Source: Macrostomum hystrix
Taxonomy: Eukaryota > Animalia > Platyhelminthes
Assembly (NCBI GenBank): GCA_950097015.1
Contig: CATNEN010000029.1
Span: forward strand, 4,774,001-4,838,000
DNA length: 64,000 bases
Direction of reading: 5' to 3'
Shown here: piece by piece, positions 3,806-59,600 of the stretch
How positions within the stretch are numbered: position 1 is the stretch's first letter
How the letters are laid out: each line of letters opens with the position of its first letter
Notes under the pieces: model-generated
What the model was told of the DNA's origin: nothing
The model's input: only the letters and a program-made list of their open reading frames with translations
Databases searched by the model: none
Program-made: the position numbers and the translations under genes

Positions 3806-3879
3806 TATAATATATTCAATATTAGAAATATTCTGTTGAATTTATTCACTTCGGCCTAACAAACATTTTTGTGTATATA

Positions 3880-27137: not shown

Positions 27138-27757
27138 CGAGGGTCAGTCAAAAAGTCCAGTCTAAGGAGTGGCTGCCACGTGGTTCAGCGGGTCCCAAGA
27201 AGTTCCGTGCCGAGCGGGCAGCAGCGAAGGTCTTGGCGACTGTGTTCTGGGATACTGACGGAGTTGTGATGGTTGACTTCCTAGAAAGCCAGAAAACCAT
27301 CAACGCCATCTACTACGAGTCGCTTTTGCGAAAGCTCCGCACCGAACTGGCCAAAAAGCGACCTGGCAAGCTGCACCGTGGAGTGCTCTTCCACCACGAC
27401 AATGCACCAGCCCACACTTCTCGACTGTGCCGGGAGGCTCTGCGAGATTTCCGCTGGGAAATACTTCAGCATCCTCCGTACAGCCCTGATTTGGCTCCTT
27501 CAGACTTTTTTTTGTTTCCAAAGCTGAAGGAGGCGATCAAGGGAGTTCGACATGACAGCAAGGAGGCTGCCAAGAAGGCTACCGTACAGTGGCTTGCTGC
27601 GCAGCCTCCTGCCTTCTACATGAATGGCCTGGAGAGATGGCGACACCGCATGCAGAAGTGTCTGACCCTGGAGGGGGATTATGTAGAAAAGTAGATTTGT
27701 GCGTGAAGCTTGAAGCTCGTGACAATAATATTATCATTACTTTTTGACTGACCCTCG
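27138..27757 (+). mobile_element. Internally deleted mariner element (620 bp)
   Basis: TA|CGAGGGTCAGTCAAAAAGT ... ACTTTTTGACTGACCCTCG|TA. The open C-terminal transposase has VFWD, HHDNAPAH and HPPYSPDLAPSDFFLFPKLK; the HTH region and first Asp are absent. Confidence 0.93.
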
Positions 27758-28619: not shown

Positions 28620-29231
28620 CTACAGCAAAGTGCAGCCATTTCGCTTATTCTTTCTCTCGCTCTTATTCTGGGCCGCGAGGTGCGCCCGCACCGCCTCTTC
28701 GAAGGTGTTTTCCACACCGCGCATTGCTCGAGCCGAGCACTCCACGAAAGCAATGGCGCCGATCTCCTTTGCCAATTCCTGGCCCTCCTGGGTAGACACC
28801 GGCGCGCTATTATTTCTCTTCAGCTCCTCTAAGGTCGCGTAGTCTGTCCGTAGGTCAGTTTTCAAGGCAGCAAGAACAAGGGTTGCCGTTTTACTGTAGC
28901 GTTTCAAATCCGGCACCCATTTGTTCCGCACATTTTCGTAGCTATCCCGGTGTTCAACAGAGTAACACACCAGGAACACGTTGGCGTCTGTGTAGCTGAG
29001 CGGTCGCAACATTTCGTAGCCCTCCTGTCCAGCTGTGTCGTGAATTGACAGCTCAATATCTGTGTTGTTAATTGATAGGTTTTGCGTAAATTCGTCGTGA
29101 ATTGTTGGAGTATACTGCTTTTCCTCATATTTGCCCGCCTTGTAGGCCGCTAGTAGACAGGTCTTGCCGACTGAGCCTTCACCGACCAAGACCAGCTTTA
29201 GTGGGATGCGAGTTGGTGCGGACATTGCCAT
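28620..29231 (-). CDS. Divergent Rho-family GTPase with CAAX, intronless
   Basis: GEGSVGKT, YTPTIHDEF, HDTAGQEGY, LKTD, ECSA, polybasic tail with CTLL. Confidence 0.92.
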   Translation of the reverse strand: MAMSAPTRIPLKLVLVGEGSVGKTCLLAAYKAGKYEEKQYTPTIHDEFTQNLSINNTDIELSIHDTAGQEGYEMLRPLSYTDANVFLVCYSVEHRDSYENVRNKWVPDLKRYSKTATLVLAALKTDLRTDYATLEELKRNNSAPVSTQEGQELAKEIGAIAFVECSARAMRGVENTFEEAVRAHLAAQNKSERKNKRNGCTLL

Positions 29232-30226: not shown

Positions 30227-30847
30227 TCAGAGCAACACACATCCGCCACTTCGCTTCTTCTTTTTCTTGGCGTACAGGCCCTTAGAAACCAGGTGAGCAC
30301 GTACGGCGTCCTCTATCACCTCCACCAGTCCGACTCCTTTCAGCGCCGAGCACTCGACGTACTTGCTGGCTCCAATTTCTGTCGCCATCGTTCGGCCATC
30401 TTCGCTGCTCAGCACCGATGCGTTCTGCCGCCTGAGATCATCGATTGTGGCCGGATCGGACCTTAAATCGATCTTGGTCGCGACCAGAACAAGTGGTACG
30501 TTTGCTGCGAAGTGCTTGAGTTCTGGGTGCCATTTGTCACGCACATTCCTGAAGCTGTTCACGGAGTCCACGGAGAAGCACAGCACAAACACATCGGTGC
30601 CGGGGTAACTGAGCGGCCGCAACCTGTCGTAGTCCTCTTGGCCCGCAGTGTCCCACAGCTGCAACCGAAATGGTCGATTCTCCACCGTTATGTCATGCGA
30701 AAAGTTGTCAACAATCGTCGGCACGTACTTCTCCGGGAAGCCTTTCTTCATCAGCACGGATAGCATGCAGGTCTTTCCGACTGATCCATCCCCAATCAGG
30801 ACGACTTTGAGTGTGTCTGCTCGATTACTATTGCTGCTGGTGGACAT
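30227..30847 (-). CDS. Rho/Rac-like GTPase with CAAX, intronless
   Basis: ATG at 30847; [43 protein letters not shown]. Confidence 0.93.
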   Translation of the reverse strand: MSTSSNSNRADTLKVVLIGDGSVGKTCMLSVLMKKGFPEKYVPTIVDNFSHDITVENRPFRLQLWDTAGQEDYDRLRPLSYPGTDVFVLCFSVDSVNSFRNVRDKWHPELKHFAANVPLVLVATKIDLRSDPATIDDLRRQNASVLSSEDGRTMATEIGASKYVECSALKGVGLVEVIEDAVRAHLVSKGLYAKKKKKRSGGCVLL

Positions 30848-31579
30848 TTTACTATCACACTCTCCTGCTTTCTTTTCTGCGAGAAAACTTCCAGGCAAGG
30901 TTTAGAGGCTGGCGAGTTTTGTGTGAAGAGGCTGCGCGGGGTTGCAGTAAATAGCACGGCGCCGTGTCTCTTCTGTCCTCCCCTCTGACAAGGCTTCTAA
31001 CTTTATGCGCGCGGATTGGCATGGAAAGCTGGGTGCTCCTCCTGGCTTACAGTCTGGTCCACCCTGTGGTCGCTCCACCCCGATCCTGAGCCGTGAACAC
31101 TTTCCTAGGCGCCCACCCTACCCTTTGAATGCAAAGCGAGCCAGAAAATTACTTTTTAGTTTCTCTGACGCATCGCTTAATTTAGCTCATGCAGTTTACC
31201 TTGTCATCTTCAATTCTCTGTCTAACGCTACGTTTTACTTCAGCAGCTCTCGAGGTCTCACTTCTGACACAGGTTCTGTAATGGGTTGCGAACAATTGCA
31301 AAAAGGGTCATTCGTACTAGTGTTGTTGCTTTTGTAAATGCAGTTTGTGCACGCTATATATACGAGTATAAACTCACGGATGTTTTTATACCCGTGTGTG
31401 AGCTTACTGTTCACATCCTTCTTAGTTTTTAATTTCTTCATTCTGCTCGTAAATAAGCTTAACTCCAGTAAAGCTAATTTATTAAAAAATGTATTTAAAG
31501 AAAGATAAACTATTCCTGAACTTGCAATCTATTAAAAAAATAATAATAATTGATTTTACCTACCCTAATTAAAGCAAGT

Positions 31580-32339: not shown

Positions 32340-32924
32340 TCAGAGAATGCTGCAGCGTGACTTTGGCTTGTGCGTGGCTGCCTTTGCTGGCATCATCACG
32401 GCTCGGATGGAGTCGTCGAATACATTCTTGAGACCTTTCTGCGTCAGTGCCGAGCACTCCAGGTACTTGACTGCGTTGATCTCCTTGGCCAGCGCCATGC
32501 CCTGCTGTTGTGAGACTGGCACCTGACCCTTGCTCTTCAGCTTCTCAATAGTTTCCTTGTCCTCCCGTAGATCTAGCTTGGTACCAACCAGAACAATAGG
32601 CGTGTTAGGACTGTGGTGGTTCACCTCAGGGTACCACTTAGCGCGCACGTTCTCGTAGCTGGCCGGATTCACCAGCGAGAAGCAGACGATGAACACGTCT
32701 GTCTGCGGGTAGCTCAGCGGTCTTAGCCGGTCGTAGTCGTCCTGACCAGCGGTGTCCCAAAGGCCCAGGTTAATCGGCTTGTTGTCAACCATAATGTTGG
32801 CTGAGAATGTGTCAAACACAGTCGGAATGTAATCGCTGGGAAAGGCGTTGGTCGTGTAGGAGATGAGCAGGCAGGTCTTGCCCACAGATCCGTCGCCGAC
32901 CACAACGCATTTGATGGACTGCAT
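32340..32924 (-). CDS. Rac-like GTPase (Rac1 paralog), intronless
   Basis: [47 protein letters not shown]; 194 aa. Confidence 0.96.
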
Positions 32925-33974: not shown

Positions 33975-34800
33975 TTATTGAAATGCGCACGCCGATTGGG
34001 TGCTGATTTTTTTGTTTATTTGATGGCACTTCTTCGAGAGTTGCGACACCATCTGAGGTACCAGGAAGTAGCTGCCCAGCCGCGTCTTAATCGGGGAATC
34101 TTTCAAGCGACGGTTTACCCTGGTCATGATATCGAAAATGTGCTCAGTCTTATACCTCTTCTAAATGGCGTCGCACAGGGCCTGCACATATGGCGAGCCT
34201 TCTTGCTCGTCTCGGATAGCCATGTAGCCCTCAGTGTTGGCGTAGCACATCAGCAGGTCGCTGTCCTGCGGACAGGGCAGGTCGAACGGCCCTGGTGCTG
34301 CTTCAAAGCCGTCGGTCGTTTTTTTTCCGCTCGGAGTCGCTGTGAGTTCCACGGCAAGCCTGTAGGGAAAAACGCGGCTAAAATTCTAAGTCCTGCTGCA
34401 GCCATTGTAGATTAAGCCTCGTGGAAAAAATTCACCTGAATAAAGAACAATTTCGGCCTGTGCCGCAGGTTTTGGCAGTGGTTTGATTTGAATTTCTCCG
34501 CAATGGACTGGACCTCTAGGCGGACTCCGTCACGGCCGAAAATGCAGCCCTGAGCGCCGTGGGCCATGACAAAGCACACGAAGCAGCCGTGCCTGGGTGA
34601 TACCTGAAAGAATGCGACGTCACTAAGCAGACTGACAATTTCGTTGCAACGGAGGTTCTGGTAAATAATTACTTGGAAGGCCAGGCTCTCGAGCAAAGAT
34701 TTCACTCTGCAGATCCTGCTGCGAGCCAGTTCTGTCCTCTAGCGTGCTCCCGTCATATTCCTCTGTGTTGATCACCAAACAGAGTCGCTGGGGTGAAGTC
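33975..34800 (-). pseudogene. Caspase pseudogene
   Basis: TSPQRLCLVIN, DRTGSQQDL, FVMAHG, KLFFIQ|ACRG (76-nt intron 34435-34360), CPQDSD. Frameshift near 34708 and in-frame TAG at 34163-34161 where the 45-kb paralog has E. Confidence 0.85.
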
Positions 34801-34915
34801 AGGGCAAATGTACACACCTGTGCGCGTGCGTGCCCAGGAGTCAGGGGAATGGGCAGAATTGGCGTGTGCCAGTGCTCACACTCCTGCAAATTAGCTTGTA
34901 TTATCGTATAATCAT
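34800..34915 (+). mobile_element. 3' fragment of SINE family B abutting the caspase pseudogene 5' end
   Basis: Matches 42872-43075 in reverse (GTACACACCTGTG, CAGGAGTCAG, ATGGGCAGAATTG, CCTGCAA followed by an AT-rich tail). Confidence 0.65.
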
Positions 34916-36198
34916 AATCAATCATTAGAAGGCATCGTCGAGTGGTGAGCCACTCAAGATTCGATCTTTCACTAAGCAAATTCGAGTCAAATTTTTACTG
35001 CCATCAGCTTCACAAGCCGAACGCCGTCCCCATAAAAGCTTGTCTCGGAATCGATCGATAAGCGATTAATGCTCAACTGTGCTTAACTTAACGCAATCAA
35101 GCAGTTTTCGATGCGCCTGCGCATGTTAAAGCTGCTTGCAATGCGATCTTCAAAGTGCGAGTTTTGTACTCGTAGCTTCAAAAAATTACAATGCTTAGCT
35201 GCTCATGTAAGTAGTACATAGAGTTAGGCGGGCACTTTTTTGGCTATTTACGAAGTTAAATAGTAAAACTGCTCAATCTGTTTTTAGACGCCTTGGGAAA
35301 AGACGCGCACACATTTCCTCATTGTTTATTACCACTATTAATTCGTCTCCAACGAAATTTTCCCTGGCCACCTTATAAAGATCCTAATTGCACCCGAAAA
35401 TAAAATTTACTTTCTTTTCTGAGGGAGGCGTACTGGCTGCACATTCTGTACAGTTGGCTGCAACCCTAACTGCTCGTCCCTGGACTTTGTCTCTAGATTT
35501 ACGGACCAACAATGTACAAACAAACTATCGATTAAATTTATAACCTAAAAATTTATTCATTCACTCGCTATCTCTGACTTGTTCTCTTTCGTTTTAAATA
35601 AACCTGAAGATGCACACTGTTGTGCGAAACGCGTCCTTAATTTTCTTAAATCGAATACCGCATGTTGATTTTCGTATTTGTCTTCATCTAACTAGCAAAG
35701 CGAGCAACTTTGCACTCAGGCCAAATTCTGTTTTTCGGGAAAACAGAAGGCATCGTTTCGCAGGCCAGTCTGTGATTTCCTAAAATAAAATTAGACCGTA
35801 TGCGCCTCATAGGTCTTATTGGGTAGCAAACGTCATGGCTTAAAATTCTGTTCTCGTCGAAAGGAAAGTTACAGTAAAATGAATCTCTCGTACACAAGGG
35901 CAGTGTCTTTCATCTCTTTGTGCTATCAATTTTCTTCAAGGCCTGTGTTTACTATCGCTCTTGCAAGTGTGTGTGTGTGTGATGGGGATAGACGTACAGT
36001 ACTGTGTTCTGTCTGACGCTGAATAATAGAAAACTTTCAAAGACTTAAACAAATATGTACAACGCTTTGCTCTACATCTCTGAGAGAATCCCGGAACTCC
36101 AGGCAGAAAAATACTCAAGAGATTGTGAAATGTAAATATAAGACCGAATCCAAACACCTGCAAACTTGAAAATTCTGAATCCAAGAGCACTATTCAGC

Positions 36199-38348
36199 AT
36201 GCAAAGCGTCAAGTGTGTGATAGTTGGCAACAGCCTATCTGGCAAGACATGCATGCTCGAAGCCTACGTCAATGGTTCAATGCCGAGGAGTTTCATTCCA
36301 ACTGTGTATAAGACCTACTCGACTACAGTTTGCGTTGAAAGTGAGTCGATCGAGTTAACTCTAGGCGACACTGGTGGGGCTGATGGTTACGATAGTCTCA
36401 GGTCGGTTGCCTATCCTCTGACGGATGTTTTTATCGTCTCCATCGATCTCACAAAGCCTAGTACTCAAGTGCTGGCCAGCGTGCGAGACAGATGGTACCC
36501 GGAGGTGAGACACTACTGCCCCAATGTACCTACCATCCTGGTCGGGACTAAACTCGACCAGCGCTGTAATCAAGACGTCATCGATGGCATGAATGAGCAT
36601 GATGAGACTCCTGTGACAACTGAGCAGTGCAACCAACTGGCCCAAGAAATCAAAGCAGTGAAATACATGGAGTGTTCCGCTAAAACACTGGAAGGCCTCA
36701 AGGAAGTTTTTGAAGAGGCAGTTCATGCCGGACTCGCTGCCAACAGACGAAAGGGGAAGAAGAAGAGACAGAAATACAACGAGTATGAACATTGTTCATT
36801 TTGAAGTACTTGAAAAGCTGGTTGCAACTAATTAACTTATTTGCCTTTATTAAGTTAGCAGTTAAGTTAAATTGAGCTCATCACCTGATTCCATCATGCA
36901 GAGATTCAATGAAGACATTCTTTCAATCGCTGTCCTCGGGCAGAAGACACTCGGAGAGTTCGATTAGGTGAGCCTCTTCAGGTAGCATCGTAAGTTCAGT
37001 TACGAAAATCTGAAAATTCGCAACTGCATTCGAAAAAACTTGCAGAACCACAGAGGACGGCAGCGCCGCCACCCAAGATCCCCAGGCTACATCGCCTCTG
37101 GGAGAATCTAGTGTAAAGTACGCAACTGAGTTGTCTCATTGCATCCAGTCGATCTATGTATGCAGCCGTCAAATACTAACTACTCGAGTTATAAACTATA
37201 TATTTGCAGATCGCCAACCTCAATCAAAGCTTTCTTTCGAGGTCTACGACCCGGAAAAACCTACAAGGTTTTAAGGTAAGCGGGGCTTGGCCCTGAACCT
37301 ATGTTTTAGCAATATTTTATTAGTAAAAAGAGGTAATAATCTAAGCACATTTCAAATACAATTTGCATGAGTATTGACAATTCATGCCAAATTTCAGACA
37401 AGCGAAATCTTTTGAAAAGTCTTATTCAATTCTGGGCGAATCGGGTCAATCAGGAGACCTCTCAGAGATTCCTGAAGCAATGGCTCAAAATGCAGGGTGA
37501 GCAGAGAAATTGTGCCGATAAAAAAATTTCCCCTTTCAATTTTCAAATGCGTTTAAAAATGCGCTGCTCAAATTGGATCCTATATTGGCTCTTGTTTGCC
37601 AATTTTTAGGACGCTAGAAATGCCAGGAAAGTTTGAAGAGCAGCCAACAATGACCTCAGCAAAAAGTAAGGAGAATCGTAATTCGGAAACGACCAGCGGA
37701 GAGTCAGATATAGAACATGGTGAATCAAAAGATTCGGATTGCATTATCAGCGAACCGGACCCAATCGTCTCGTTTCGAATCCCTGCAGTGGCCAAAGGCA
37801 ATGCACTGACTTTGAGAGTTCTCCTTCTAGGAGACCCTGCAGTGGGCAAGACTTGTCTGGTATCGGCATTTACAGAGGGCCGATGCCAACAGGATTATAT
37901 TCCGACTGAGGCTGACGACTGCTTCGCCTTGGAAGGCGCATTCGCGGACAATCAGTTGCGCCTCAAGCTGTGGGATGTGAGCTGCACCGAGATGTTCGAT
38001 AATTACAGACCTCTGAGATACCGACAGATGGACGTTTTTCTCCTCTGCTTTTCCATTGCCTGTCCGACCAGCTTTGAGAATGTGCGCACGAAATGGTACT
38101 CTGAGGTGAGGCGCCACTGTCCTGACTCTCCAATAGTGCTAGTTGGCACCAAGGCGGACCTACGGGACGACCAAGAGACGCTCGACAAGCTCAAGGAGAG
38201 TGGCCTTGCTGCCATAGGCGAGTCACAGGGCAAGGGAGCAGCTAAGGCGATCGGAGCTGCGAAGTATTTGGAGTGCTCAGCACTGAGTCGAAAGGGCATC
38301 TCAGACGTGTTCAAAGAGGCGGTACTGAAGGCCCGCAAGCCGTCTTGA
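36199..38348 (+). CDS. Predicted tandem Rho-Rho atypical GTPase (~541 aa)
   Basis: Exons 36199-36782, 36902-36967, 37046-37117, 37210-37275, 37398-37496, 37610-38348. All introns GT-AG and phase 2; internal exons 66/72/66/99 nt are stop-free. Domain 1: GNSLSGKT/DTGGA. Domain 2: GDPAVGKT/DVSCT. No CAAX. Confidence 0.75.
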
Positions 38349-38778: not shown

Positions 38779-39670
38779 CTTAAGACTGGACAGAATTTGA
38801 AATGGGATCTTAAGACTGGACAGAATTTGAAATGGGATCTTAAGACTGGACATAATTTGAAATGGGATCTTAAGAGTGGGCAGAATTTGAAATGGGATCT
38901 TAAGACTGGACAGAATTAGAAATGGGATCTTAAGACTGGACAGAATTTGAAATGGGATCTTAAGACTGGACAGAATTTGAAATGGGATCTTAAGAGTGGA
39001 CAGAATTTGAATTGGGATCTTAAGACTGCGCAGAATTTGAAATGGGATCTTAAGACTGGACAGAATTAGAAATGGGATCTTAAGACTGGACAGAATTAGA
39101 AATGGGATCTTAAGAGTGGACAGAATTTGAAATGGGATCTTAAGAGTGGACAGAATTTAAAATGGGATCTTAAGACTGGACATAATTTAAAATGGGATCT
39201 TAAGACTGGACAGAATTAGAAATGGGATCTTAAGACTGGACAGAATTAGAAATGGGATCTTAAGACTGGACATAGAATTTGAAATGGGATCTTAAGACTG
39301 GGCAGAATTTGAAATGGGAACTTAAGACTGGGCAGAATTTGAAATGGGATCTTAAGACTGGAAAGAATTTGAAATGGGATCTTAAGACTGGGCAGAATTT
39401 GAAATGGGATCTTAAGAGTGGATAGAATTTGAAATGGGATCTTAAGACTGGACATATAATTAGAAATGGGGTCTTAAGACTGGACATAGAATTTGAAATG
39501 GGATCTTAAGACTGGATAGAATTTGAAATGGGATCTTAAGACTGGACATATAATTAGAAATGGGGTCTTAAGACTGGACATATAATTTGAAATGGGGTCT
39601 TAAGACTGGACATAGAATTTGAAATGGGATCTTAAGACTGGACAGAATTAGAAATGGGATCTTTAGAGTG
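38779..39670. repeat. 30-32-bp tandem repeat (~29 copies)
   Basis: Unit CTTAAGACTGGACAGAATTTGAAATGGGAT, with 1-2-nt length variants in the right half. Confidence 0.95.
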
Positions 39671-39675
39671 GATTG

Positions 39676-39750
39676 AATTCTAGATGCCCCAAATGAATGT
39701 GGCCTCGCCGCGGAATCAAACTTCGGGACCTTGGATCCGGGTTCTTCCAC
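39676..39750 (-). mobile_element. SINE family B head fragment
   Basis: CCCCAAATGAATGTGGCCTCGCCGCGGAATCAAACTT matches 43177-43215. Confidence 0.7.
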
Positions 39751-40348
39751 AGTTATTCAACCAAAAGTATTTTTATTAAACGTTTTTGAGCCTGAATTCA
39801 ATGTAAATTAAATTTTAATTATTTTTGTTCTCGTGCACGTTTGACGAAAAAAGGAGAGGCCATTCTACTTAATACTCTTCTTGTCTTCTGTAATTTTGAA
39901 TCACAAAGTGCAAGCTGGCTGCTTTGAACTCGTTTCTGTTTCGGTGCTTTTTTAAAATGAATAGAATTTCGCTAAAGGCGCAGAGCCCACTAAAAGCCTA
40001 AATTAATAAAAAGAATGCAGCCAGGGCTGCTGCCTCAGCCCAACGGCCAGTGCGAGAAGCGATTTAGAGTCTAATATCATTGATATTGTCCACCGTAGCT
40101 AGCGACACGAATCGTTGGCAGAAAGATACGAAATGGGTGAAAACGTGCATCTCTTGCTTCTATCAAGCATTCGTTAAGCATTGTTTCTTTATCTAAAGAC
40201 TTTTTTCACGAATTTTTTTTCTCAATAAAGCAATGGTTTGTGCTTGGCCAAAGCATTTATAGCAAGTGAGAGGGTGGATGTAAAACAAGTAGGACGCGGG
40301 CCCAGTTGACAGATCATAGGCATTGACTACCAGGCCCACGACTGCATC

Positions 40349-43300
40349 ATGGAGTCAAGAAACATCATGTGCGTCATCGTAGGCGATAGTGAAGTGGGCA
40401 AGACCTGTCTAATCTCTTCTTATCTAAAAAATGGATTTCAAAGCCAGCACATCAGTACTGATTTTTTTGTTGCCCACCGATTCACTACGATTGTTGAAGA
40501 GACTACCTTTAAGTTAACACTATGGGACTCGCCAGGCGAGGAAGACTACTACAGGCACGTGCCAGCGAGCTACCCGCAGACTGACGTGCTGCTAATGTGC
40601 TTCTCAATTGACTCTAGAAGCAGCTTCGAGCACGTGCGGGACAAGTGGAATAAAGAGCTGCGTCGAAACTGCCCCAAAGCGCCAAAGATTCTAGTTGGAA
40701 CCAAACTGGACCTTCGGAGCGGTGGAGCTGCTGCCGGAAGTTTGATAAGCAAGCTGGAAGGATTGGAATTGTGCAAGAAAATGCGTGCAGACAGGTACAT
40801 TGAATGCTCAGCTCTGACTGAAAAGAATGTGAAGGAAGTCTTTGACGAGGCCATCTTCGCAACCGTTGGTGGACCATCAAGAGCGCCGGAGAAAAAGAGG
40901 TAAAAAGCACTTTTTCTCTGAATGAATGTTACAACAAAATTTTTATTTTGCCCACGCTTTTTCCATGCAGCAATTCGCCGCTTTCAAAGTTAAAGTCTAA
41001 AAAGTGGAAGAAGAACAAAGGGACTGATTGTTCAAGGTAACTTTTTCTATTCAAGTATTTGCCCCTGGCAGCATAGCACAATAAAAATATGTTATCCAGC
41101 ATTTTCACTTGACCCATTTCCAAATTTTAGTAATTTGTTCAGCAGCAGGGAAAATGTTGCCGATAGAAGTTACGTTGATCAGGGAATTGAGCCGTAAGTC
41201 TGTTTGGCTTAATTCTGTCTGAATTCTTTGTGAAGACTGCTATTCATTCCACTTTAGATGGTTGATGCTTGTCCCAACAGAGTCAGAATCTTCCAGTTCT
41301 TTATTTCTACAATTTTTGTTCTGTACTAGATCAATTTAGTGCAGAAAAGCCTTCCTGCAGAAAGACAGTCGACTCAGCCCTATTATTATAGACGCGAAAG
41401 AGCATATTTTACCTTGGTCTTGTATTGTTCACCCGCTAGCCCTAAATCGCACTAAAGACCCCGACTTCACTCAACAGTAGAAAGACCATGCTATTTCCTC
41501 CCCTGGGGAAAGATCACGGTGGGATTTCAAATGTTGAAAGCGCTCATTACCTATAGTTCCTTTTGTAAAAAACAATATTCTTTTTTGTAAAGGACCTTCT
41601 TTAAAAATTGATTTAATTCTCACATAAGGGAATATGACTGTGCCAATGAGCAACCACTTCGAGAGTCCACCGCTTTCATAAATAGATACGGCTACACGAA
41701 GCCAGATGTGAATCTGGTGCATGAACAGTGAGTATTCATTTAAATCGCAAAATTTTTCGTCCTAAGCAATGTATATTTCTTTTTTGTGTCAATTTATTCG
41801 CATACAGTGCCGATGAGGACGAATATTATGCGTATGATGAAATTAAAACGGTTTGGACGGTTCAGGCTACGGACAGTGAGCCGTTCCTGTCGCCATCGCC
41901 ACCGCAGCCTTTGACCCTACCTGCAGCACCTCAAGGTCCTGCACATTCTACATTACCCAGGTGAGTTTCGAGTTTGTATTCTAAAAAACCACTGATAAAG
42001 AAAAAAATCCTAAAATCCGGAAAATTACAAGTTAGGTTTTCACAGGATAAGTAAAAAACAATTCTCCGATTTAATCATTGAATTATTTTACGATTGTACA
42101 TTTAAATTTATCTTTTCGGTTTTGGTTTTAGTCCATTGCAAGACGTGAAAACGAACAATGAAGGAGCAGCTCGGCAGTACGAAAATTTGTGCTGGCTAAC
42201 TTCATCTAACGAAGTTGAGAGACCACCTCTACCTCAAAGGTATAATTTTGAGTGGAATCACAATGAAATAAAACGAAATATTTCGCGAAATTAACTTAAT
42301 TTTCATCATGCCTAGGGAGTCACTATCCTTTGACAGATCTAAAACAATCTTAGCTTCATTCTAGGCTTGCTACGGTCACGTCAGTTCTTGCTGCTTCGGA
42401 GGTAAAATGCGACAGAGCTGCAGCGGCATCATCTTCTGCAATGGCCCCAGTGTTGAATTATCAGACAACAGAGAATCCAGCTGATTCTGGAACCTATCAG
42501 CAGGAAATCATTGAAGCTCTACCACAATATGCAAGCAGGTAAATTAATTTTACCTGACAAACATTCTATCTACAATCTACTACATAGTGCTCGTAGTTTG
42601 TACAATGAGTATGGAAAAATTTTCAACCCAGCTCACTTTTATTCACTTACATTATTAGCGCTGACGTTTTTGAAACAGGCTTAATCTTTCATTTGAAACA
42701 AAATGTTGTTTTTAATAGCTCCCAACAAGGGTTCAAAAGTTAGGGCCAATCCAGTGCATGTCCCGATACGGGGGTATACGTACTGCGTACTGCACAGACA
42801 AGGATGTGTCAGACCCGTTCTTGAAAGCAATGGCGAGGCCGCGATCGTCGTAGACTTTGCCTCTCAGCAGCTCCTTTAATAATAATAATTCCTCGTAATT
42901 GCAGGAAGGCTGCGGCAAATTGGCACATCATTTGGTGACACTAGACCCGCAGCCAGCGAGGAGGCAATTCTGCCCATTTCGCTGACTCCTGAGCACACAC
43001 GCACACAGATACTTTACGCAGGCACACGCTCACACAGGTGTGTACATCTGCCCTGACTTTCTCATCGTCAGGCAGTGTCAAGAGTACACTTCAGTACACT
43101 TCACTGTGCCTTGGAGGTTGGCCCTCAAGGGCGTAAATTGCACGACAAGCCCCCAAGCCTTCTCTCCACGGCTGCGCCCCAAATAAATGTGGCCTCGCCG
43201 TGGAATCGAACTTAGAGACCGTGGTGCGAGAGGCAAACGCGATAACCGCTCTGCCATGCAGGTGGAGAATCGTACATAGTAGCTGTTGCGGCTCTGGGGG

Positions 43301-45858
43301 CATGGTTCCACTGCGTCGCGTTTTGACACTCTTCAGAGACGATCTGTAAAACTCCGAATTAAACAGCGTGTTTGCCTGAAAATAGTTCAACACCATTTAT
43401 GTACGAGCTATCTGTAGACTAAATCCGAGTTTGGTCGGCAGCAAGTTATAGACAACAAGCGTACATTCAAATAAACTGCAAATACTTTTTCATAAAAAAA
43501 ATTTTAGCCTGTCAGAAATTGACCACGAAAAAACAAAAGAGCAGGCAAAGAGGCTCGAGGCTGAGCAAGCAAAGCTGAAGCTTCTTGCCCTCGGTGATGA
43601 GGCGGTGGGCAAGACTTGTCTCCTCACTATGTACGCTGAAGGAAAATGTCCGTCAGAGTATGTGCCCACTGAGACGGACGACTGCTTGACGAAGGAAGCT
43701 CAAATCGATACAAGTACAATTACAATTGGCCTGTGGGACCTCAGTGGGTCAAAAGATTTTGACCATATGCGACCGGAGAACTACAAACTAACTGACGTGA
43801 TCCTCATGTGCTTCTCGATCGTCAGTCCCTCCACCTTTGAAAGTGTTCGCAACCGATGGCAACCGGAAGTGTCTCGCTATTGCCCCAACACTCCTGTTGT
43901 CCTGGTGGGCACCAAGGCTGACCTGCGCCATGACCAAAGCACGCAGGAGAAGTTGCGCGCCAAAAAGCTCACTCCAATATCCCACTTACAAGGAACAAAG
44001 CTAGCCAAAGACATCGGCGCCAAAATTTACGTTGAATGCTCCGCCTTCAGTAGGCAGCGACTCCAGACCGTCTTTGATGTGGCTCTGCAATTCGCTCTGG
44101 AAAGTCAGGAAAGTTCAAGGGAGCGAGCTTCAAATCCTGCCAATAGGTAAGCATTTTATGTAAAGTAAACAATAAGTTTTGAGCTAACGCTGAATTCACA
44201 AAGGCCTGTGACAGTCATAATGATAAAATGAAATTACAAGAGTAGGAGAGCAGTGACAGTAATATTGCAAGCTTGTCTGCGGATTGATTCAAATGAATGA
44301 TCTAGTTTTTCAGAATGTCCTTCAATCTTTCTGAATAGTCTTATTTTATATAAACGAATCCTCATAATCATACAAAAAGTAGAGTTACATAAAAGTTCGT
44401 CGAGTTCTATTATGAGTTCTATTATGTACTTAACTAGCCAACCTGATGCCTCTATCAACGATGACTACTACAACGACATTGATGATGACTGCGACAGTGC
44501 CAAAAACGTTGAAGACGTCGAAGATTATGACTACAAGGCTGTTGACTTTGGTGATTCTTTTGTCGAACAAAGTCATTCTAATGCTGCAAGCACAACTACG
44601 GGTACTTTAGAACGAAAGCCGGTGGTTCCTCCGCACCCGGTTCCAAAACCGCGCAGATTCTTCAGCCGAGAGACTACGGAAGACCAGCGAGGGATGAGCG
44701 ACGATTTGTCTTTGAGCATAGCACCACAGTCTGGTACAGCGCTTTTCGACGAGTTAGCAGACAACCGAGACTCGTAAGTTTGTAATCTGAAGGAAATTAA
44801 AACTGGCACTATTTGATTGTGATCCCTACATTTTTTATTGCGTATGGCTTTCCATTTCGATGCATTTACTAAGGCTTAACAAACCTTAACTAACTTCAGA
44901 CATGGTCGTGAGCAAGAAATAGCAGAATCGAATCTGACAAAAGCCTGGTCCTCCATGAAGCAGTTGTCAACAATCTTTCTGAATCGGTATGTTAATGCAT
45001 TTTTCTTTTATTTATGCAATTCGGCAGCACAACTCAATACTATTTCATTCTTCGCTGATCTAACTTAATAAATTCTATTTTTCACCCAGCTCGTGCTTCG
45101 CTAAAGAAATTTACCGAGTGACTTCACCTCAGGGATTCTGCCTAATCATTAATATAAAAAACTACATAGACTCTGTGAAGTTTGAGGAGCGACTGGGCTC
45201 GGAAATCGATGTGAAACGCGTGAAGGACACATTTAGCAAACTCAATTTCATAGTTCGAGTTCATGAAGATGTCAGCTGCAATTCATTGGCTACAGTCTTG
45301 AGTCTTGCTTCCATCTCTCCTGAGCTGTCAGATCACGGCTGTTTCGTCTGCTTCATCATGGCTCACGGTGCGAACTCGTTGATCTACGGAAGCGACGGCG
45401 TAGCCCTGGAGATTCAATCGATTACTGAACGGTTCCGAGGAAACCAGTGCGAAGGATTGCGCAACAAGCCGAAGCTCTTCTTCATTCAGGCGTGCCGCGG
45501 AATGGAAAACATTGACGAAGAAAGAGGTGTAACAATCGATCAGCAAGTCGCCGAAGAACTGGGTGCGCACTGCCCCAAGGACAGCGACTTTCTGCTGAGC
45601 TTTGCGACCCCGAGCGGTCAGGTTTCCCTGCGCAGAGAGAGCGAGGGATCGCCGTTCGTGCAAACTGTGTGCGATGTGATTGAGGAGCGATACAAGAGTG
45701 AGCACGTCATCGACATGCTGACCACTGCCAACGGACGCCTCAAAATGAACCCAATCTATAAAGGAGGCCTACAGATGTACGTGGTGTCTGAGACCCAGAC
45801 GAGACTATCTAAAAAGTGCTACTTGGATCCGGGCTTGGCATCGATGTTTCAAGAATGA
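40349..45858 (+). CDS. Predicted Rho-Rho-caspase fusion protein (~938 aa)
   Basis: Exons 40349-40899, 41808-41960, 42132-42239, 42365-42538, 43508-44146, 44438-44773, 44900-44986, 45090-45858. All introns GT-AG and phase 2; total 2817 nt open. Rho1: GDSEVGKT/DSPGE. Rho2: GDEAVGKT/DLSGS. Caspase: MAHG, QACRG, SLR. Confidence 0.85.
42872..43262 (-). mobile_element. tRNA-derived SINE family B, near full length (~390 bp)
   Basis: Box A TGGCAGAGCGG, box B AGTTCGATTCC, body, then (TAT)n tail at ~42875. Confidence 0.8.
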
Positions 45859-48040
45859 GGACTTGATAAAAGCGAAGAAAAATTAATGCCGGCCATAATT
45901 TTTTTCGATAACAAGCAGGTCACTCACGCTGACAGGTTTTTGGTTTTTTCCGATTTTGGATATTAGGATGTGAGTAATGTGAGTTAAAAACATTTTGTTT
46001 ATCTACTTTTAATAGTTATGTTTCTTAACACATTAAATGAACTAAATTATAATTAATTAAAAACACCGAATACACGCGAGCTCGCAGCTTTTCTTTTAAA
46101 CTGTGATCAACATAGAAGCTGATCAATCGATATCACTTTACAATCACCATGTGAAGAATCCACCAGAATAACAGTCAAAATATTACTTATATTGGCTCTG
46201 GTGTAGCTATAGCTACTGTTGGTCGCCAATTTGAAAGAAAGGAAAGTCTGATCAATAAAGTTGTCGAAAAAAGCAACGAGTAACCATGAACACGTACGTT
46301 TTTTCGGGCGAGTCATACTTTCTTTCTCATTGGTTAGACGCTTCGGTGTTTATTTATTTTTTCCTTAACATTCTCTGCATAAATATTGTTTTATTTTATG
46401 TATGGTAATGCTGAAGTAATTTTTAGCTTTCTTTTAAGTTCCAAAAAACTCAAATCCGTAACATGCAAGCGTATATGACTAGCACTTTGTCGCGTACCTC
46501 TTGAGTAAGACATACCTGTTCTACCCCACCCGCTATTTTTTTACTTCCATGCTTAAAAATCCACAATTAGAAACTTTTTTGTCAATTCTAGCATGCCTAG
46601 AAATTGAGACTCTTTTCTTTTCCGAAAGATAAATCGCTATTTTGGTTTAATTCTTACAAAAAAATATTTTGTGCTTTTCGAAATTGCTCTCACTTCGCCA
46701 AACGATATTTTCCGTTTTAAATACTACAGTTTTTTAACACTAAAAGTTGTCTATTACATATTCCTAAGCCATGAAAAGCAAAAATGCGTCCGAGAGTTTT
46801 TTCCTTAATATTTGTTTCTGCTTGCTTAAAATGTAGGTGTGTGTAACGGCATAAGTCAATCCAGTCAGGCCTGTCGCATTAGGGCAGTTTCGAACTGCTG
46901 ACTTACCACCCAGGCCCAGTAGGTGAACGGGCAGTCGCAAGGATGTTTGTCATCCGTCCGGGTTGTACGAGCGCATTTGTAAGGGAACTATAACGTGCAT
47001 CTGCCCCCAGCAGTAACTATCGCAAGTTCTTACTGTAAGTTCTGTGATGACTACAAATTGGTTTTAACCTGGGCAATATTTGCCAGAGTCCACCCTCATA
47101 CTAATCCGCGAGGGCAAATTTAAATTGTTCCTGCAACAATTAGAAAGACAATTATTTTTTGGAGCCTCATTCCTTATTTTTTCACTTGCTAAAGGGGAAA
47201 TTCAATGCCCACTGACTACTCTACGATAGCTGCCAAACAGAATCAACGATTTCATGAAAGTCCACCATCTGAATTCAAATTTTCCGCCCTTTACGATTAA
47301 CAAAATTTCAAGGCCGTCAGAGTCAGCATTGTTGAGGAATTCAGCGCTCTTGTCGTCGGAGACCCTGGTGACAAGAACAACTCAATTTCTCACTATTAAC
47401 CTCTATAGCGAATCCATATAGGTTTAAAAATGAAAAAATGATGAGCAATCCAAAGTAGTCAACAATGGTAGTTAACATGATTACATGATGAAGTTTTTGT
47501 GAGAAGAAAAATGATATGCATATATTTGTGGTTTTTGCCACCAGACACCCCGGCGAGAATCGTTGAATATCTCGACTTTGCCGATGTTTTGTGATTCTGA
47601 AAGTTGTTTCATCGGATGGAGCGAAAAATTGTAACCAGTCTTCTTGGATTTTCATGGCGATTGGTTGAACATTTTTAAAGATAAAGAAAATAAAAAAATA
47701 TGGTATTTGAAATGCACCTTCCAAGGTCTACTGTTAAGAGAAACATCCATGCACATCATGTACAGCTGGAATTATTGTAAATCAGTTATTTGCTTAAACC
47801 ACTTGAAGTTCCTGTAAGGCGATGGAAAACTGTGCACTAAGGCAATGGCGTGAAAAAAATGTTAGTTTTTATTTTTCAGACAGCTGAGATCCTATAGAAA
47901 ACGTTATACAATACAATACGTTATAATTGGAAAACACTTTAGACGGGATTAAGAAAGAAAGCTAAGAAAAAGCATGAAACTACGACGAGACTGAACCGGG
48001 TATTTCCCTATAAAGTAACTCTAATTGATTCTGATAATGG

Positions 48041-53640: not shown

Positions 53641-56600
53641 TCATTGAGGCATTGGGTCCGGCTTTGTGGAGGCTAGATTTGGATTCAGGAAGCACTTCTT
53701 CGAGAGTCTCGTCAATGTCTCCGGCACAACGTACAGCTTGTTCTCTCCATCGTCGATCGGGTTCTCCTTGAGGCGCCTCTTCACAGTGGTCAGCATGTCG
53801 ATGATGTGCTCAGTCTGATGCTGCTCCTCAATCACTTCGCACACGGTTTGCACGAATGGCGATCCACCATTTGCGGTGCGCAGTGAAACGTGGCCATCTG
53901 GACTTGGAAAGCTCAGCAAAAAGTCGCTGTCATTAGGACAGTGCATGTTCAGTACGCTTGATGCTTGATCAGCATAGACAATCTGCCTGCCTGTTCTCTC
54001 ACAAGGAATGCGGCCACGACAAGCTTGGATAAAGAACAGTTTGGGCGTGTGGTGTAATCTGTAGCAAAGTCCTCCCTCAAACGGTGCAGTGATCGACTTA
54101 ATGTCAAGCGGTTTTCCGTCGCTTAGTATGATTGACGAGCTTGTGCCGTGAGCCATGAGGAAACAGACAAAACAACCGTGATTTGACAGTTCAGGTAAGA
54201 TCGCCGTCTGGCTTAGAAGGTCGACTAATTGATTGTAAGTCAGATCCTCGTGTACTTTAACCAAGAAGTTCAGTCTCCTAAACAGCTCCTTCACACGCTT
54301 GACATCAAATTCCGAGCCTTTTCGCTCCTCGAAAAGCTCGTTCTTGTACTTATTGATGTTAATGATCAAGCAGAAGCCCTGTGGCGAAGTCACTTGGTAA
54401 TAATCCACAGGTGGTCGTCTAAAATTCAAGAGCAAATTGCACGATGCGACAATCAAAGCTGGATGAATGCAAAAAGACGTATGAATGCAAAAGAAAAGTA
54501 GCTTTTGAAAAAAACTTAATCAATAGAAACTTAAAAGCGGGTGATTTTCACACGAAATGAAATGATTGAGCTACTTGCTATAGGATCTGCTGTTTCTAGG
54601 ATTTGAATCCGAATTCCTCATAAAATTAAGAATGATAAATCATCTAGCTATTGTTGCTGGGGGCGCCTCCACCATGGAAAACGGAAGCTCTTACGTTGAA
54701 ATGTTCATGCGCGGCTTTGGTATCGGATTCAGCAATCGATTTCGTGGACAGCGTGGCAAAGGAGTCACAGAATTTTCAGTAATTGCTTCTGTTATTGGTA
54801 GCTCAGCTGGACATTCCACTGATTTTAGCAGGTCATCATTTAAGTGCGGCTTTTCTGTTCTGGACGCAGATCCTTCAGGGATGACATCGTTGCCCGAACT
54901 CGCATCGTTTTCATCGTGTCTTCAAATTACAATATTGCAAAAAGCAATTAACTAATAATAAATTTTTAAGTTCTTTATCGTAAAATACATTGATATGGCA
55001 CTCATGATCATCGGAATTAATCAATATTTATATAATCGAAGTTTAAATGCTAAGTTTATCATATGCAACTAGGCTGTTTCAAAGTGCCTTCTGTGGTTTA
55101 GGCCTAGGGCACGTTCGTGTTTGGACTCGCACTAGCTGCCAATTTAACTAACCTTAGGACTAAGAAAATGGCCTCAGTTTTAGGAAACATGCGCAATTAT
55201 TCAAATAGCTCATAAGCTCAATGCACTCTGATCACGAAAACGCGATGTCTATTGCACCAAGCAGAGAGGCCAGACTTGCACTGAATTTTATTAATCAGTC
55301 AAAGTTTGTTTAAGCCAGACTCATGCTCGTGCGTAGCAACCGCACAAGCTTCAACATAAGCGAAAACTCGGTGTGTCACCCCTAAAATTAGGCACCGCTG
55401 CGACGGCTAACTGCCCTGCATTAATAATCGCCAGTCGGAAGATAAAATCGAAGATATCGTTTTTAACTGGGACATTTTTGCAAAGAAAAAGCCATATCAC
55501 ATTTTCGTTAAAGGTACAAGAAATCTAAGTGCAATTAAAAGAAAAGACAAAAATCGCTTACTTAAGTCGATCAGCGCCCTCGGCAATGCCTGCAGCTCCG
55601 GCAACAGCTTGTGATCTGCAATTTCAAGTTAAAGCGAGAAGCTATATAGTAATCGCATACACATTCACTCAGCCATTAGAAAGTAGAAGTGGTACGCTAA
55701 AAAATGTGCGCTAACACGCTGCGCTAGTCGACCTGATGGCGAGGTTCGACCTGGTGTCGGCAACACGCGCTTCCGCAAACCGCCAATTCGGCTGGTGACC
55801 TTTGCTGAGTGCAAGCGTAGGAGGCGGAAAGCGCGCGGCCGTTTCGCCACTACCCGCTTGGCGCAGCTAGACCACATGCTAATAATGCCTTACCGCGAAT
55901 GCAGCCGGCTAATCAACTGCGACACAGTGGAACCGCAGTTCATTTGATCTGATCAACGCCTGCTCTACTGTGACCTGCGGCTCTCCGACCCGCTCTACAG
56001 GCCGCCGATGCACCCCCCAACGTACGCTGTCTCGGTGGCCTTGTGGTCTGCACAGGCGGCGGACTACAATTCAATAGGAAAGGCTATAACAACTACCGCA
56101 GCCAAGACTCTGCCACTGATGGAGCCCGCGTCACGGCAGCTACCAGTTTGGGCGAACAACCCTGAGGTCTATGAGGCTCGGCGCACAGTTAAAGGACTAC
56201 GACGCTCCAGGCGCCCGACTTCCGACGCCAAGAAGGCACTGGCGGACATCTAGGAAAAGCGGCAGCAAGCTGCTGTGGACGACGCCATCCGGGTCGCAAA
56301 ACCGAGTCGTCTAGCCGGCCGTGAATGCCCTTACTGGTCGTAAGAAGAAGGCGGCGCTAAACCTGGCTGGTGACTCTGCGGTGGAGCGCAGAAATATGCT
56401 GCGCAGTTTCTTCGTCACCATCGTCAATGCGCCGTCGCCGTCACTGCCTGCTGACCTATCGCTGCCCCCTGAGGTATCACTGTCGAAGCAGGAGGATTTC
56501 GACATCCGTCCTTTCACCAGCACTGACGTTGTGGAGTTCGCTCGCAGAATTCCGGGAGGTCGCGCCCCCGGCCCTGACGAAGTGCCCATCGAGGCGTTGC

Positions 56601-59600
56601 GAGTCCCGAGGGTCGTCACTTGTAATAACTTGAGACTGAAGGCTGGCCAGGAATTGATTCACAAACGTAGCGAGCCAGTTGGAAGTTGCGGCTCCTTATA
56701 ATATCACTTCGTTCAATTTGACTGGCCCTAGGACTTAGGGCACGGCCGGACCAGCCACCTCAATTAGCACGAAAGCCAAGCGTGACACAAGTAAACTGCA
56801 GTCAGCTTGCACTAAGAACTGATAGACGCAAAGAAATGAAGCAAAGCAATAAACATAAAGTGCAGAGTGAACGCATTTAAGAGTCCATTGAATAACATCA
56901 CATCTCCCCTCTGAGTCAGTTTTCCCCATCACAGCTGCAGTCTCTCAGATGGGCCACGAGCTCTCAGAGGGTACCGCCGGGAAGTCGCGGCATCCTGACG
57001 CGCGTTGTTCTCTGGTCCGTCGGCGAGTTCGGGTGCCGCCTCCCTGACGGTGGCGCCGCTGGCGGTAGTAGCAGGATCCTGCTCTGACGCGCGCCGCGAG
57101 CTCTCGGGGTCGTGTCACCGCCGCCATCAGTCAGCGGCCGGCCGGCATCAGCGAGGTCGAGGGCGAAGCCGTCAGCGCGGGCCGCCACCAGCTGATCCGC
57201 ATGCCGCATGTGCTGACCGCGCTGCGAGTCGACGATGCAGTTGCGGCTGCCAGCGCCCGTGATGACGCCCTCCGCCCAGCGCGGCGTGTCGCCGGCCCTA
57301 GCGCCGGCGCTGATTTCGCGGAAAAGCACACGATCGCCGGTTTGGAACTCACGCGAACTCCCTGATGAGGTCACCGATGTTCTCGTCATCGAGATGGACC
57401 TGCGCCATGATGCTGGGCCAGTCCAGCCGCAGCTTAGCTAACCAGTCCCGTCCGAGCAGCGCCGATTCGCCCCTGCGTGACGACAAGCAGCGGGAGCTAC
57501 AGCTGCAGCCTGTTGTGCTTGACGGTGACCTCCGCCTGAACAGTACGAACAGAATGGGTTCCGGCCCACCGTAGCACTGTGACGCAAATCCTGGGCCTCC
57601 GCCGCATCATCGAAGAAGCGCGCATCCACCAGTTAATCCTGGTTGCTCTTTTCGTGGACTTTCGCCGGGCTTTCGACTCGGTGGTACGTGACGCGCTGCC
57701 CCTGGTGCAATGGGCCTACAATGTGCCGTAGGAGCTCATTACCGCCATCATGGCGCTGTACGTGGGCACCATCGCTTCGGTAGTGACGTCAGACGGCCTG
57801 TCGGACTGTTCAGCACGACCTCGGGAGTGCTGCAGGGGGACACGCTGGCGCCTTTGTACTCTGGGTGCTCTGTACCGGCCTGCCATCTGCAGACCACGGC
57901 TTCCTGCTGTGTCGGCGCGCGAGCCGGTGACACCCCGAGAAGAGGCCCTGCGCTCTCGGCTACGCAGACGACATCGCGCTGATGTCTTCGACAGTCGAAG
58001 GCGCCCAACGGCTGCTGGATGACCTGAAAAAGGCGGCGGCGGGAGTCCGTCTCATCGTGAACGTGCAGAAGACCGAGGGGCTGACGGTGCCGCGAAATCT
58101 TCCGGACGAGATTCTGCTCCGGGACGATAGCGGCCACGGGACCCCGGGACTTCCGGGGTGCCGCCAGTTCGTTTATCTCGACGGACTAGGGCCGGACGTG
58201 AGCGACGATTTGGCGAGACAGCGACAGCCTGGGCTGCCTTTCGATCAGTGCGCACGGTGCTGCTTTCGGCTGCGCTGACGGACAGCGCCAGGTCGCAGCT
58301 TTTCCAGGCGGTCGTTAAGACCGTGACGCGCTGCCCCTGGTGCAATATAATGCTCTATAATGCGCAGACCTGGACTCCGACGGAGGCGCTCAAGGGGCAG
58401 CTCAACACGACACATGCGGCCCTGCTTCGCGCTACGTTTGGCGCCCGCCGCGGCCCAGGAAGCGAGACGACCGACTCACTGTACAAGCGAGCGCGACTGA
58501 CGCGGCCTTCTGACTTGCTGAGACAGCGGCGCATGCGCCTTGCTGGGCACGTGATCAGGGCTGAAGCCTACTGCCCTGAGCCGCTGCTGGATGTGCTTCT
58601 GTGGACTCCGCAGGGACCGCGCAGGCGCGGACAGGGACGATCGGCCCAATACATCGACCTGCTCTTCTCAGACGCGCGCGCCCCGAGCCAGGCTGACGGA
58701 GTGAAGCATGTCAGCGATGTAAACTATGCATTAAGCGCGCGTTTTGACGCTGGCCCCCTTTTTTGGGCCACTGCGGCGGGTTGCGCTCTATTATTATTAT
58801 TTAGCAAATAAAAATCCATCGCACATTTTTCGTAAAAAGGTACAAGAAATCAAGGCGCAATTAAAGGCAAAGACAAAAAATAGTTTACTGAATTCGATCA
58901 TCGCCAATGCCTGCAGCTCCGGCAACAGCTTTTGATCTGCAATTGCAAGTTAAAGCGGGAAGCTATAGTAATCGCCTATCGCAATACATATTCACTCTGC
59001 CATTCGAAAGTAGAAGAGCAAAAATATTTCTCACGATTCAGGGAAATCGTTGGCAGATTTCTTTTTCGAAAAAATCTTAAACAAAGAGGCTAAATCATGG
59101 TGTGTTCTGAAAATGACGAAATGAAAGACTAAGGTAGTGCAATTTAATACCAATAATGAAAATTGAAGATATCGTTTCTAACTAGCATTGCGTGTTAAAC
59201 TATATGTGCTAGCATGCATTTTGCTCTTAGCAAGTTAAATGTCAATTATAACACTTACAATTTCTGTTTAAGGCTACGTTCCTTTAAATTTGACTGAACC
59301 AATTTTTTAGTTGCACGAACCGCCTCATCGAAAACCTCCGTTACACCCTCTCTTGTTCGGGCAGAGCTTTCGAGATATTTAACTGCCTTGATCTTCTTGG
59401 CCATTTCTAAGCCTTGCTTGCATGTGATCGGAACCTGGTTCCGCTGCTTAAGGTTGTCGATCGTTTCCTGGTCATCGCGAAGGTCCAGGTGGGTGCCGAT
59501 CAGCAAGATGGGCGTGTTCGGACAATGGTACTTCACTTCCGGGTACCAGCTGGTGCGCACTCTCTCATAAGTTGTAGGGCGGATTAGGCAGAAGCAGATG

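Follow-up and report, generated by a model that had tools for sequence, protein, structure and literature searches.

An expressed gene of the flatworm Macrostomum hystrix joins two Rho domains to a caspase

A stretch of 64,000 nucleotides (nt) from the flatworm Macrostomum hystrix (GenBank assembly GCA_950097015.1, contig CATNEN010000029.1, positions 4,774,001 to 4,838,000 of the forward strand; hereafter the window, to whose numbering all positions refer unless another contig is named) contains three open reading frames (ORFs) for a Rho domain, a second Rho domain and a caspase domain. Transcript data showed that the three ORFs are one expressed, spliced, fused gene, and the product is rather probably an initiator-type caspase in which two modified Rho domains would take the place of the usual prodomain.

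Gene structure and transcript evidence

Searches with Pfam profiles assigned the ORFs at 40349-40903 and 43605-44150 (+) to the Ras/Rho family (PF00071, E 1.3e-38 and 9e-32, respectively) and the ORF at 45118-45858 (+) to Peptidase_C14 (E 4.9e-46), matching both the ORF list and the identities given in an initial annotation made from the DNA letters. Contigs assembled from four public sequencing runs of one organism (X1 to X4) were then compared with positions 40100-46050. About 45% of the words sampled from the 5.5-kb stretch were present in the four runs, which roughly equals the exon share, and the spliced contigs carried GT..AG joints for all ten introns, each in three to four runs. The presence of such splicing indicates that the four runs are RNA, and the small number of positions at which contigs and window differ (about 10) indicates that they come from the same species but from a different strain or individual.

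The gene supported by RNA has 11 exons (labeled E1, E2, E3, E3b, E4 to E8, E10 and E11) and 10 introns, with a coding sequence of 3045 nt and a product of 1014 amino acids (aa). The protein is ordered as Rho1, a linker of ~ 245 aa, Rho2, a linker of ~ 170 aa and the caspase domain. Its parts, including the untranslated regions (UTRs), are as follows.

40275-40348 (+), 5′ UTR, from the contig starts in all four runs
40349-40899 (+), E1, start codon and Rho1 (aa 1-183); ORF, Pfam and RNA
40971-41036 (+), E2, 66 nt, a polybasic stretch and then Cys; joint 40899 to 40971 in 4 runs
41131-41193 (+), E3, 63 nt; joint 41036 to 41131 in 4 runs
41629-41727 (+), E3b, 99 nt; joints 41193 to 41629 (4 runs) and 41727 to 41808 (3 runs)
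41808-41960 (+), E4, 153 nt, acidic Tyr-rich, then Pro-rich linker; RNA joints
42132-42239 (+), E5, 108 nt, linker with PPLPQR; RNA joint 41960 to 42132
42365-42538 (+), E6, 174 nt, linker; RNA joint 42239 to 42365
43508-44146 (+), E7, short helix and Rho2 (aa 405-617); RNA joint 42538 to 43508, Pfam
44438-44773 (+), E8, 336 nt, acidic Pro-rich linker; RNA joint 44146 to 44438, no Pfam family
44900-44986 (+), E10, 87 nt, just before the caspase domain; RNA joint 44773 to 44900
45090-45858 (+), E11, the full caspase domain (p20 and p10), stop codon at 45856-45858; RNA joint 44986 to 45090, Pfam
45859-46048 (+), 3′ UTR, coverage to at least 46048; X2 record 8 and X4 record 17

The initial annotation had joined the three ORFs into a single frame of 2817 nt over eight exons with seven introns. 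The fusion into one open frame was upheld, with a GT..AG joint in the contigs at every junction, but the exon count and length were not, since E2, E3 and E3b (228 nt in total) had been missed. Likewise, the introns are indeed all in phase 2 and the internal exons all stop-free multiples of three, but the introns number ten (71-969 nt) rather than seven. The 3045-nt frame is open throughout, across every joint. A model built from splice sites only (9 exons, 2610 nt), lacking E3b and E8, was overruled by the RNA joints. The stop codons of both Rho ORFs were seen to overlap GT donors, as had been claimed (AGAG/gtaaaaag at 40899/40900 and ATAG/gtaagcat at 44146/44147). Note, however, that a phase 2 intron with a GTAA donor always reads as a stop, and therefore this overlap is not an independent signal.

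The 5′ end of the gene was defined by contig starts at 40271-40282 in all four runs together with an in-frame stop located downstream of those starts and 13 codons 5′ of the ATG at 40349, indicating that the protein begins at 40349. These data also bear on a larger gene, in which the Rho pair directly upstream (36166-38348) would be included to give four Rho domains and a caspase. Such a protein would resemble P0151, a public model from Macrostomum lignano that unites four Rho domains with a caspase p10 part and whose pieces lie in the same order as in the window. It is nevertheless very improbable and was rejected: no joint is present at the contig starts, the in-frame stop intervenes, the upstream Rho ORF ends in a TGA with no GT donor, and the two genes are separated by a 0.9-kb tandem array (38779-39679) of ~ 30 copies of a 30-nt unit with 92% matches.

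Continuity along the gene was apparent from two contigs. X1 record 4 (2197 nt) begins at the end of E4, continues through Rho2 into the caspase exon and includes 3′ UTR sequence; X4 record 14 (530 nt), to judge by lengths and depth, apparently starts 20 nt before the end of E1 and stops 21 nt into E6. Depth in X1 was similar throughout, at 16 to 20. Counting against a single gene, the contigs are assemblies, no single record covers E1 to E11, and contigs break at E4 in three runs; even so, it is barely credible that Rho1 with its linkers and Rho2 with the caspase are separate mRNAs sharing E4-E6 only in assemblies, and this reading was rejected because a joint of E4 back onto itself, which the assembly graph would treat like a repeat, explains the breaks, the two sides have similar depth (16 vs 20), the frame is open at every joint and no internal start or end signal was reported.

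The back-joint itself (41960 to 41808, a step back of 153) was present in contigs of three of the four runs. E4 occurs only once in the window, and its depth was 1.4-1.8 times that of neighboring exons. The back-joint may stem from an allele with an in-frame duplication of the exon, from a circular RNA or from an assembly loop. Separately, the region 42886-43283 in intron 7 showed contig depths of 1,600-13,000, compared with ~ 20 for the gene, and many loose ends, which points to an abundant dispersed repeat in the transcriptomes. No Rfam family or tRNA matched this repeat, and a 37-nt probe taken from it occurred just once in the window.

The caspase domain

The Peptidase_C14 match of the caspase exon scored 157.7 bits against a cut-off of 21.4 and covered profile positions 2-229 of 233, and the best matches among solved structures were caspase-7 and caspase-3 (2e-36). 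The catalytic dyad is kept, with MAHG and QACRG aligning with SHG and QACRG of caspase-7, and in the pocket for the P1 Asp residues R34, Q133 and R181 of the domain align with caspase-7 R87, Q184 and R233. The His, the Cys and both Arg positions (in ERLGS and SLR) that the initial annotation had picked out thus correspond to caspase-7 H144, C186, R87 and R233. In addition, VTID/Q falls on the caspase-7 processing site IQAD/S, so that the intersubunit-linker Asp is conserved. The catalytic and P1-pocket residues and the linker Asp were invariant in an alignment of three Rho-caspases, one ankyrin (ANK) caspase and newt caspase-7. The caspase domain is therefore intact in all catalytic and Asp-pocket residues, and Asp-specific protease activity is predicted.

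The Rho1 and Rho2 domains

Rac1 was the best solved match of both Rho1 and Rho2 (4e-46 and 3e-60, respectively), followed by Cdc42, and the 60 best solved matches of the two domains were all Rac1 or Cdc42. The Rho2 alignment with Rac1 runs through the Rho insert, and its sole gap is one residue in switch I. The main differences are set out below.

P-loop: Rac1 GDGAVGKT; Rho1 GDSEVGKT; Rho2 GDEAVGKT
Switch II: Rac1 WDTAGQEDY; Rho1 WDSPGEEDY; Rho2 WDLSGSKDF
Rho insert: Rac1 full; Rho1 ~ 7 residues shorter; Rho2 full

In Ras numbering, Rho1 carries the substitutions G12S, A13E, A59P and Q61E, and Rho2 carries G12E, A59S and Q61S. The nucleotide-binding motifs are kept in both (P-loop GxxxxGKT, DxxG, TKxD and ECSA), and neither of these internal domains has a CAAX prenylation box. 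As the equivalents of Gly12 and Gln61 have been lost from both domains, a GTPase switch driven by hydrolysis is unlikely. The proposal in the initial annotation of a protease gated by GTPase state was accordingly not sustained, as the domains seem to be fixed in one state and unable to switch; its other suggestion, that a Rho ligand gates the protease, is possible.

In the Rnd/RhoE proteins, substitutions at Ras positions 12, 59 and 61 together with retained binding motifs give constitutive GTP binding with no hydrolysis. Rho1 and Rho2 are changed at the same three positions with the nucleotide-binding motifs retained and, to judge from these residues, are probably permanently GTP-bound in the manner of Rnd/RhoE. 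They are, however, not Rnd orthologs: no Rnd chain was present among the best 60 solved matches, and both domains branch from Rac genes of the same window. From Rac1 itself they differ by the loss of Gly12, Gln61 and the CAAX box, by a rewritten switch I and by residing within a larger protein, although Rac1 is the top solved match and Rho2 aligns with it over the Rho insert. Switch I of the Rho2 type reads PTE(T/A)DDC, compared with PTVFDNY in Rac, and is conserved in the paralogs and in M. lignano. A rewritten yet conserved switch I suggests that these domains have a conserved partner other than those of Rac.

The linkers

The Rho domains occupy the prodomain position of the caspase within one gene, as originally described, and Pfam found no death-fold domain. 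In particular, no CARD, DED or other family was detected by Pfam in E8 or in the linkers of the M. lignano protein P0001 (757 aa), in which only Ras-type (Ras, Roc) and C14 matches were present, and no ANK family was detected by Pfam in the exons tested or in P0001. An AlphaFold model of P0001, the M. lignano ortholog, was prepared from a 44-row alignment. The Rho and caspase domains were modeled confidently (predicted local distance difference test, pLDDT, mostly above 85), with one helix ahead of each domain, the helix on the caspase side matching the E10 region. A linker of ~ 190 residues, equivalent to the E8 region, lay below pLDDT 50 and is predicted to be disordered, and the predicted template modeling score of 0.45 indicated no fixed domain arrangement. 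The model thus argues against a hidden folded prodomain in the linker of the ortholog. Counts of linker motifs (xID, DxxD, YxxI/V and PxxPxR) were not above the expectation from composition.

Conservation in Macrostomum

The caspase exon was used in an exhaustive HMMER search, which returned 6367 relatives; the best was P0001, annotated as a hypothetical protein, with 66% identity. Among the best 150 of these relatives, P0001 was the only one with a Rho domain. The next-best matches were M. lignano ANK caspases and one ankyrin-kinase-caspase, and identity between the window gene and these M. lignano proteins was 47-66%. Among the named matches from outside the flatworms, caspase-8-like proteins were frequent (29-35% identity), alongside caspase-3 and caspase-9. 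Word-index searches with the whole of P0001, its caspase part and the caspase exon of the window found Ras and caspase together only in P0001 and P0151, and a search of the ESM Atlas gave plain Rho clusters only, with weak scores. In the databases searched, the Rho-caspase architecture is so far restricted to the genus Macrostomum.

The corresponding M. lignano locus (L001; NIVC01001849.1, 3305-14582) has the order Rho, Rho, Rho1-like, Rho2-like, caspase, which is that of the elements beginning at 36166, 37596, 40349, 43509 and 45091 in the window, with the same strand relationship. A further caspase-like stretch is located at 1962-2237 of L001. Judged against the RNA-supported structure, both public M. 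lignano models are probably wrong. The NCBI model P0001 starts too late and lacks Rho1, while the UniProt model P0151 (1207 aa; four Rho domains and the p10 part of a caspase) has the upstream Rho-Rho gene merged in and lacks most of p20; the two models also disagree with each other.

In a caspase tree, the window gene and P0001 were sisters (98/89) and were joined by a second Rho-caspase candidate from the window (100/99). This trio fell inside a macrostomid clade of ten rows (98/97) that also contains the ANK and ANK-kinase caspases of M. lignano. The fusion therefore predates the split of the two species and has since duplicated, and the nesting within ANK caspases indicates that the Rho modules occupy the place of the ANK prodomain of that clade. 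A Rho tree recovered M. lignano positional orthologs for four Rho domains (100/100; 100/99 for Rho1; 97/98; 97/95 for Rho2), and all four domains branched from the canonical Rac genes of the same window.

Relation to known caspases

Caspase recruitment usually proceeds via death-fold domains, and recent surveys of lophotrochozoans have added ankyrin, kinase, PARP and Z-binding prodomains. A Rho GTPase prodomain would be a further class and would link Rho signaling with caspase activation, which are otherwise joined only indirectly in animals. The 2024 survey of lophotrochozoan caspases (Genome Biol Evol, PMC11463336) described ANK caspases and one M. lignano kinase-caspase, placed the ANK caspases beside DED caspases and detected no other unexpected prodomain in platyhelminths. 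The present fusion corrects that last statement. It belongs to the same macrostomid clade as the flatworm ANK caspases and the M. lignano kinase caspase of that survey and, like them, carries a long N-terminal prodomain without a death fold; in contrast to both, the prodomain consists of two Rho GTPase domains rather than ankyrin repeats or a kinase. With the DED initiators caspase-8 and caspase-10, it has in common a long prodomain and the conserved intersubunit-linker Asp, but it lacks a DED and its best solved matches are caspase-7 and caspase-3.

A literature search for Rho-, Ras-, Rac- and GTPase-caspase fusions found no description of such a protein, although it was not established whether P0001 was included in the data of the 2024 survey. 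The novelty proposed in the initial annotation thus holds for the literature searched, whereas in the databases two automatic M. lignano models already hold Ras together with caspase. The Rho-caspase can accordingly be said to add to the caspases already known to have prodomains other than death folds, having been represented only by two unnamed and discordant models.

Three other systems offer functional analogies, with no homology implied. The CARD-only genes beside CASP1 (COP, INCA and ICEBERG) are prodomain-only duplicates located next to a caspase gene, the Pyrin inflammasome couples Rho state to caspase activation, and DAPK1 and the ROCO proteins contain a Ras-like GTPase domain within a death-signaling protein. 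To our knowledge, a direct fusion of a Rho domain with a caspase occurs in none of them. The present gene is expressed, duplicated and conserved in two Macrostomum species. As M. lignano is a laboratory model with RNA interference and transgenesis, the function of the gene is directly testable.

Possible modes of action

The reading we favor, and consider rather probable, is that the gene encodes a caspase that belongs to the ANK-caspase lineage of macrostomids and is of the initiator type, with two GTP-locked, Rac-derived domains that would form the prodomain and act as docking modules for proximity activation. The position in the caspase tree and the 770-aa prodomain point to an initiator type activated by induced proximity. 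Rho1 and Rho2 would in this case be fixed docking modules rather than timed switches; a partner that binds the altered, conserved switch regions of Rho1 and Rho2 would draw caspase domains close to one another, and the clustered chains would then be cut at the conserved Asp of VTID/Q in the linker. The Rho-Rho proteins encoded next door, because they contain the same kinds of Rho module, would be candidate partners, either as adaptors or as decoys, comparable in role with the CARD-only proteins of caspase-1.

Several points weigh against this reading. The top solved matches of the caspase domain are the effector caspases-7 and -3 rather than caspase-8, so that the initiator label derives from tree position and the long prodomain. 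Rho1 of M. lignano also lacks the DxxG glycine (WDSPSKD), and at least this domain may not bind nucleotide at all. Nine coding differences were recorded between transcriptome contigs and genome (40446-43963), of which seven were nonsynonymous (Q33R, K110T, W276R, R325W, Y379S, H491L and K557R) and two synonymous; every one of them maps to the prodomain, with the caspase exon unchanged, which could reflect relaxed constraint on the prodomain. GTP binding, protease activity and the mode of activation are all predictions from the primary structure.

The same coding differences can be viewed in another way. It could be that the protein is an immune sensor with an integrated bait, in which pathogen factors that bind or modify host Rho GTPases would be lured to the Rho domains; alteration of this bait would free or cluster the caspase, and the cell would die. 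By analogy, such a sensor would be a one-protein version of the indirect action of the Pyrin inflammasome. Seven nonsynonymous against two synonymous differences, all confined to the prodomain, would fit a bait, as would the tandem, diversifying cluster, in which a second Rho-caspase with another Rho type is accompanied by Rho-Rho genes and by Rac genes that end in CAAX boxes (25586, +; 32340, -). The switch I Thr targeted by toxins is also retained in Rho1 and Rho2, and the Tyr in Rho2. However, the sample of single-nucleotide differences is tiny, and the switch regions are far from those of true Rac (PTETDDC vs PTVFDNY, with Gln61 gone), which makes the domains poor mimics. A bait sensor is therefore considered fairly unlikely. 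An extended form, in which a single chain would serve as a sensor for effector-triggered immunity, modification of the bait would fire the caspase, the Rho-Rho neighbors would be adaptors or decoys and phase 2 modules would allow quick shuffling of baits, is unlikely and is offered as speculation.

Alternatively, the Rho domains could target or restrain the caspase for local, non-lethal proteolysis, for example to remodel the cytoskeleton of certain cell types. Non-apoptotic caspase roles are well established, over the aligned core Rho2 is 50-60% similar to Rac1 and its Rho insert is complete, and the linkers contain a polybasic stretch and a PxxPxR motif. Such a role is nonetheless distinctly unlikely, as no CAAX box or other membrane anchor is present internally and none of these features is specific to it.

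Neighboring genes and possible module shuffling

The fusion gene has Rac, Rho-Rho and Rho-caspase genes as neighbors, with which it forms a local cluster. The following members lie outside the gene itself.

25586-26164 (+), single-exon Rac/Rho gene with intact Gly12 and Gln61, CAAX box CDLL
28620-29231 (-), single-exon Rac/Rho gene with intact Gly12 and Gln61, CAAX box CTLL
30227-30898 (-), single-exon Rac/Rho gene with intact Gly12 and Gln61, CAAX box CVLL
32340-32924 (-), single-exon Rac/Rho gene with intact Gly12 and Gln61, CAAX box CSIL
53641-59836 (-), second Rho-caspase candidate, with Rho ORF 59836-59255 and an intact caspase ORF 54456-53641

The four canonical single-exon genes are probably the source of the derived Rho modules. 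The Rho ORF of the second Rho-caspase candidate ends in a phase 2 GTAAGT donor, and a Rho ORF at 48863 likewise ends in a phase 2 donor. The Rho domain of the second candidate is of a different, more Rac-like type, indicating independent exchange or gain of Rho modules.

The genes of the cluster look assembled from interchangeable phase 2 exon modules. In such a family, any number of Rho exons could be joined to a caspase exon with the frame kept, which would explain why all ten introns of the fusion gene are in phase 2. If a quarter of introns are in phase 2, ten such introns would be expected by chance about once in a million, as an estimate. The all-phase-2 modular exons would thus represent a simple case of domain shuffling building new death-signaling proteins.

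Several further features of the window were noted. The 30-nt tandem array gives rise to repetitive ORFs on both strands. Between the Rho and caspase ORFs of the second Rho-caspase candidate are GC-rich ORFs, among which a motif resembling reverse transcriptase was seen by eye near 57579-57731 (+). A third caspase-like gene (33975-34979, -) is broken up among several ORFs that do not share a frame, one of which ends FFIQ; QACRG was present in none of its listed ORFs, and the gene may have an intron at that point or may be a pseudogene. Finally, an ORF of 578 aa at 9966-11702 (-) contains a CIDE-N domain (E 2e-10), and a fragment of a mariner-type transposase (Transposase_1, DDE_3) is located at 27002-27694 (+).

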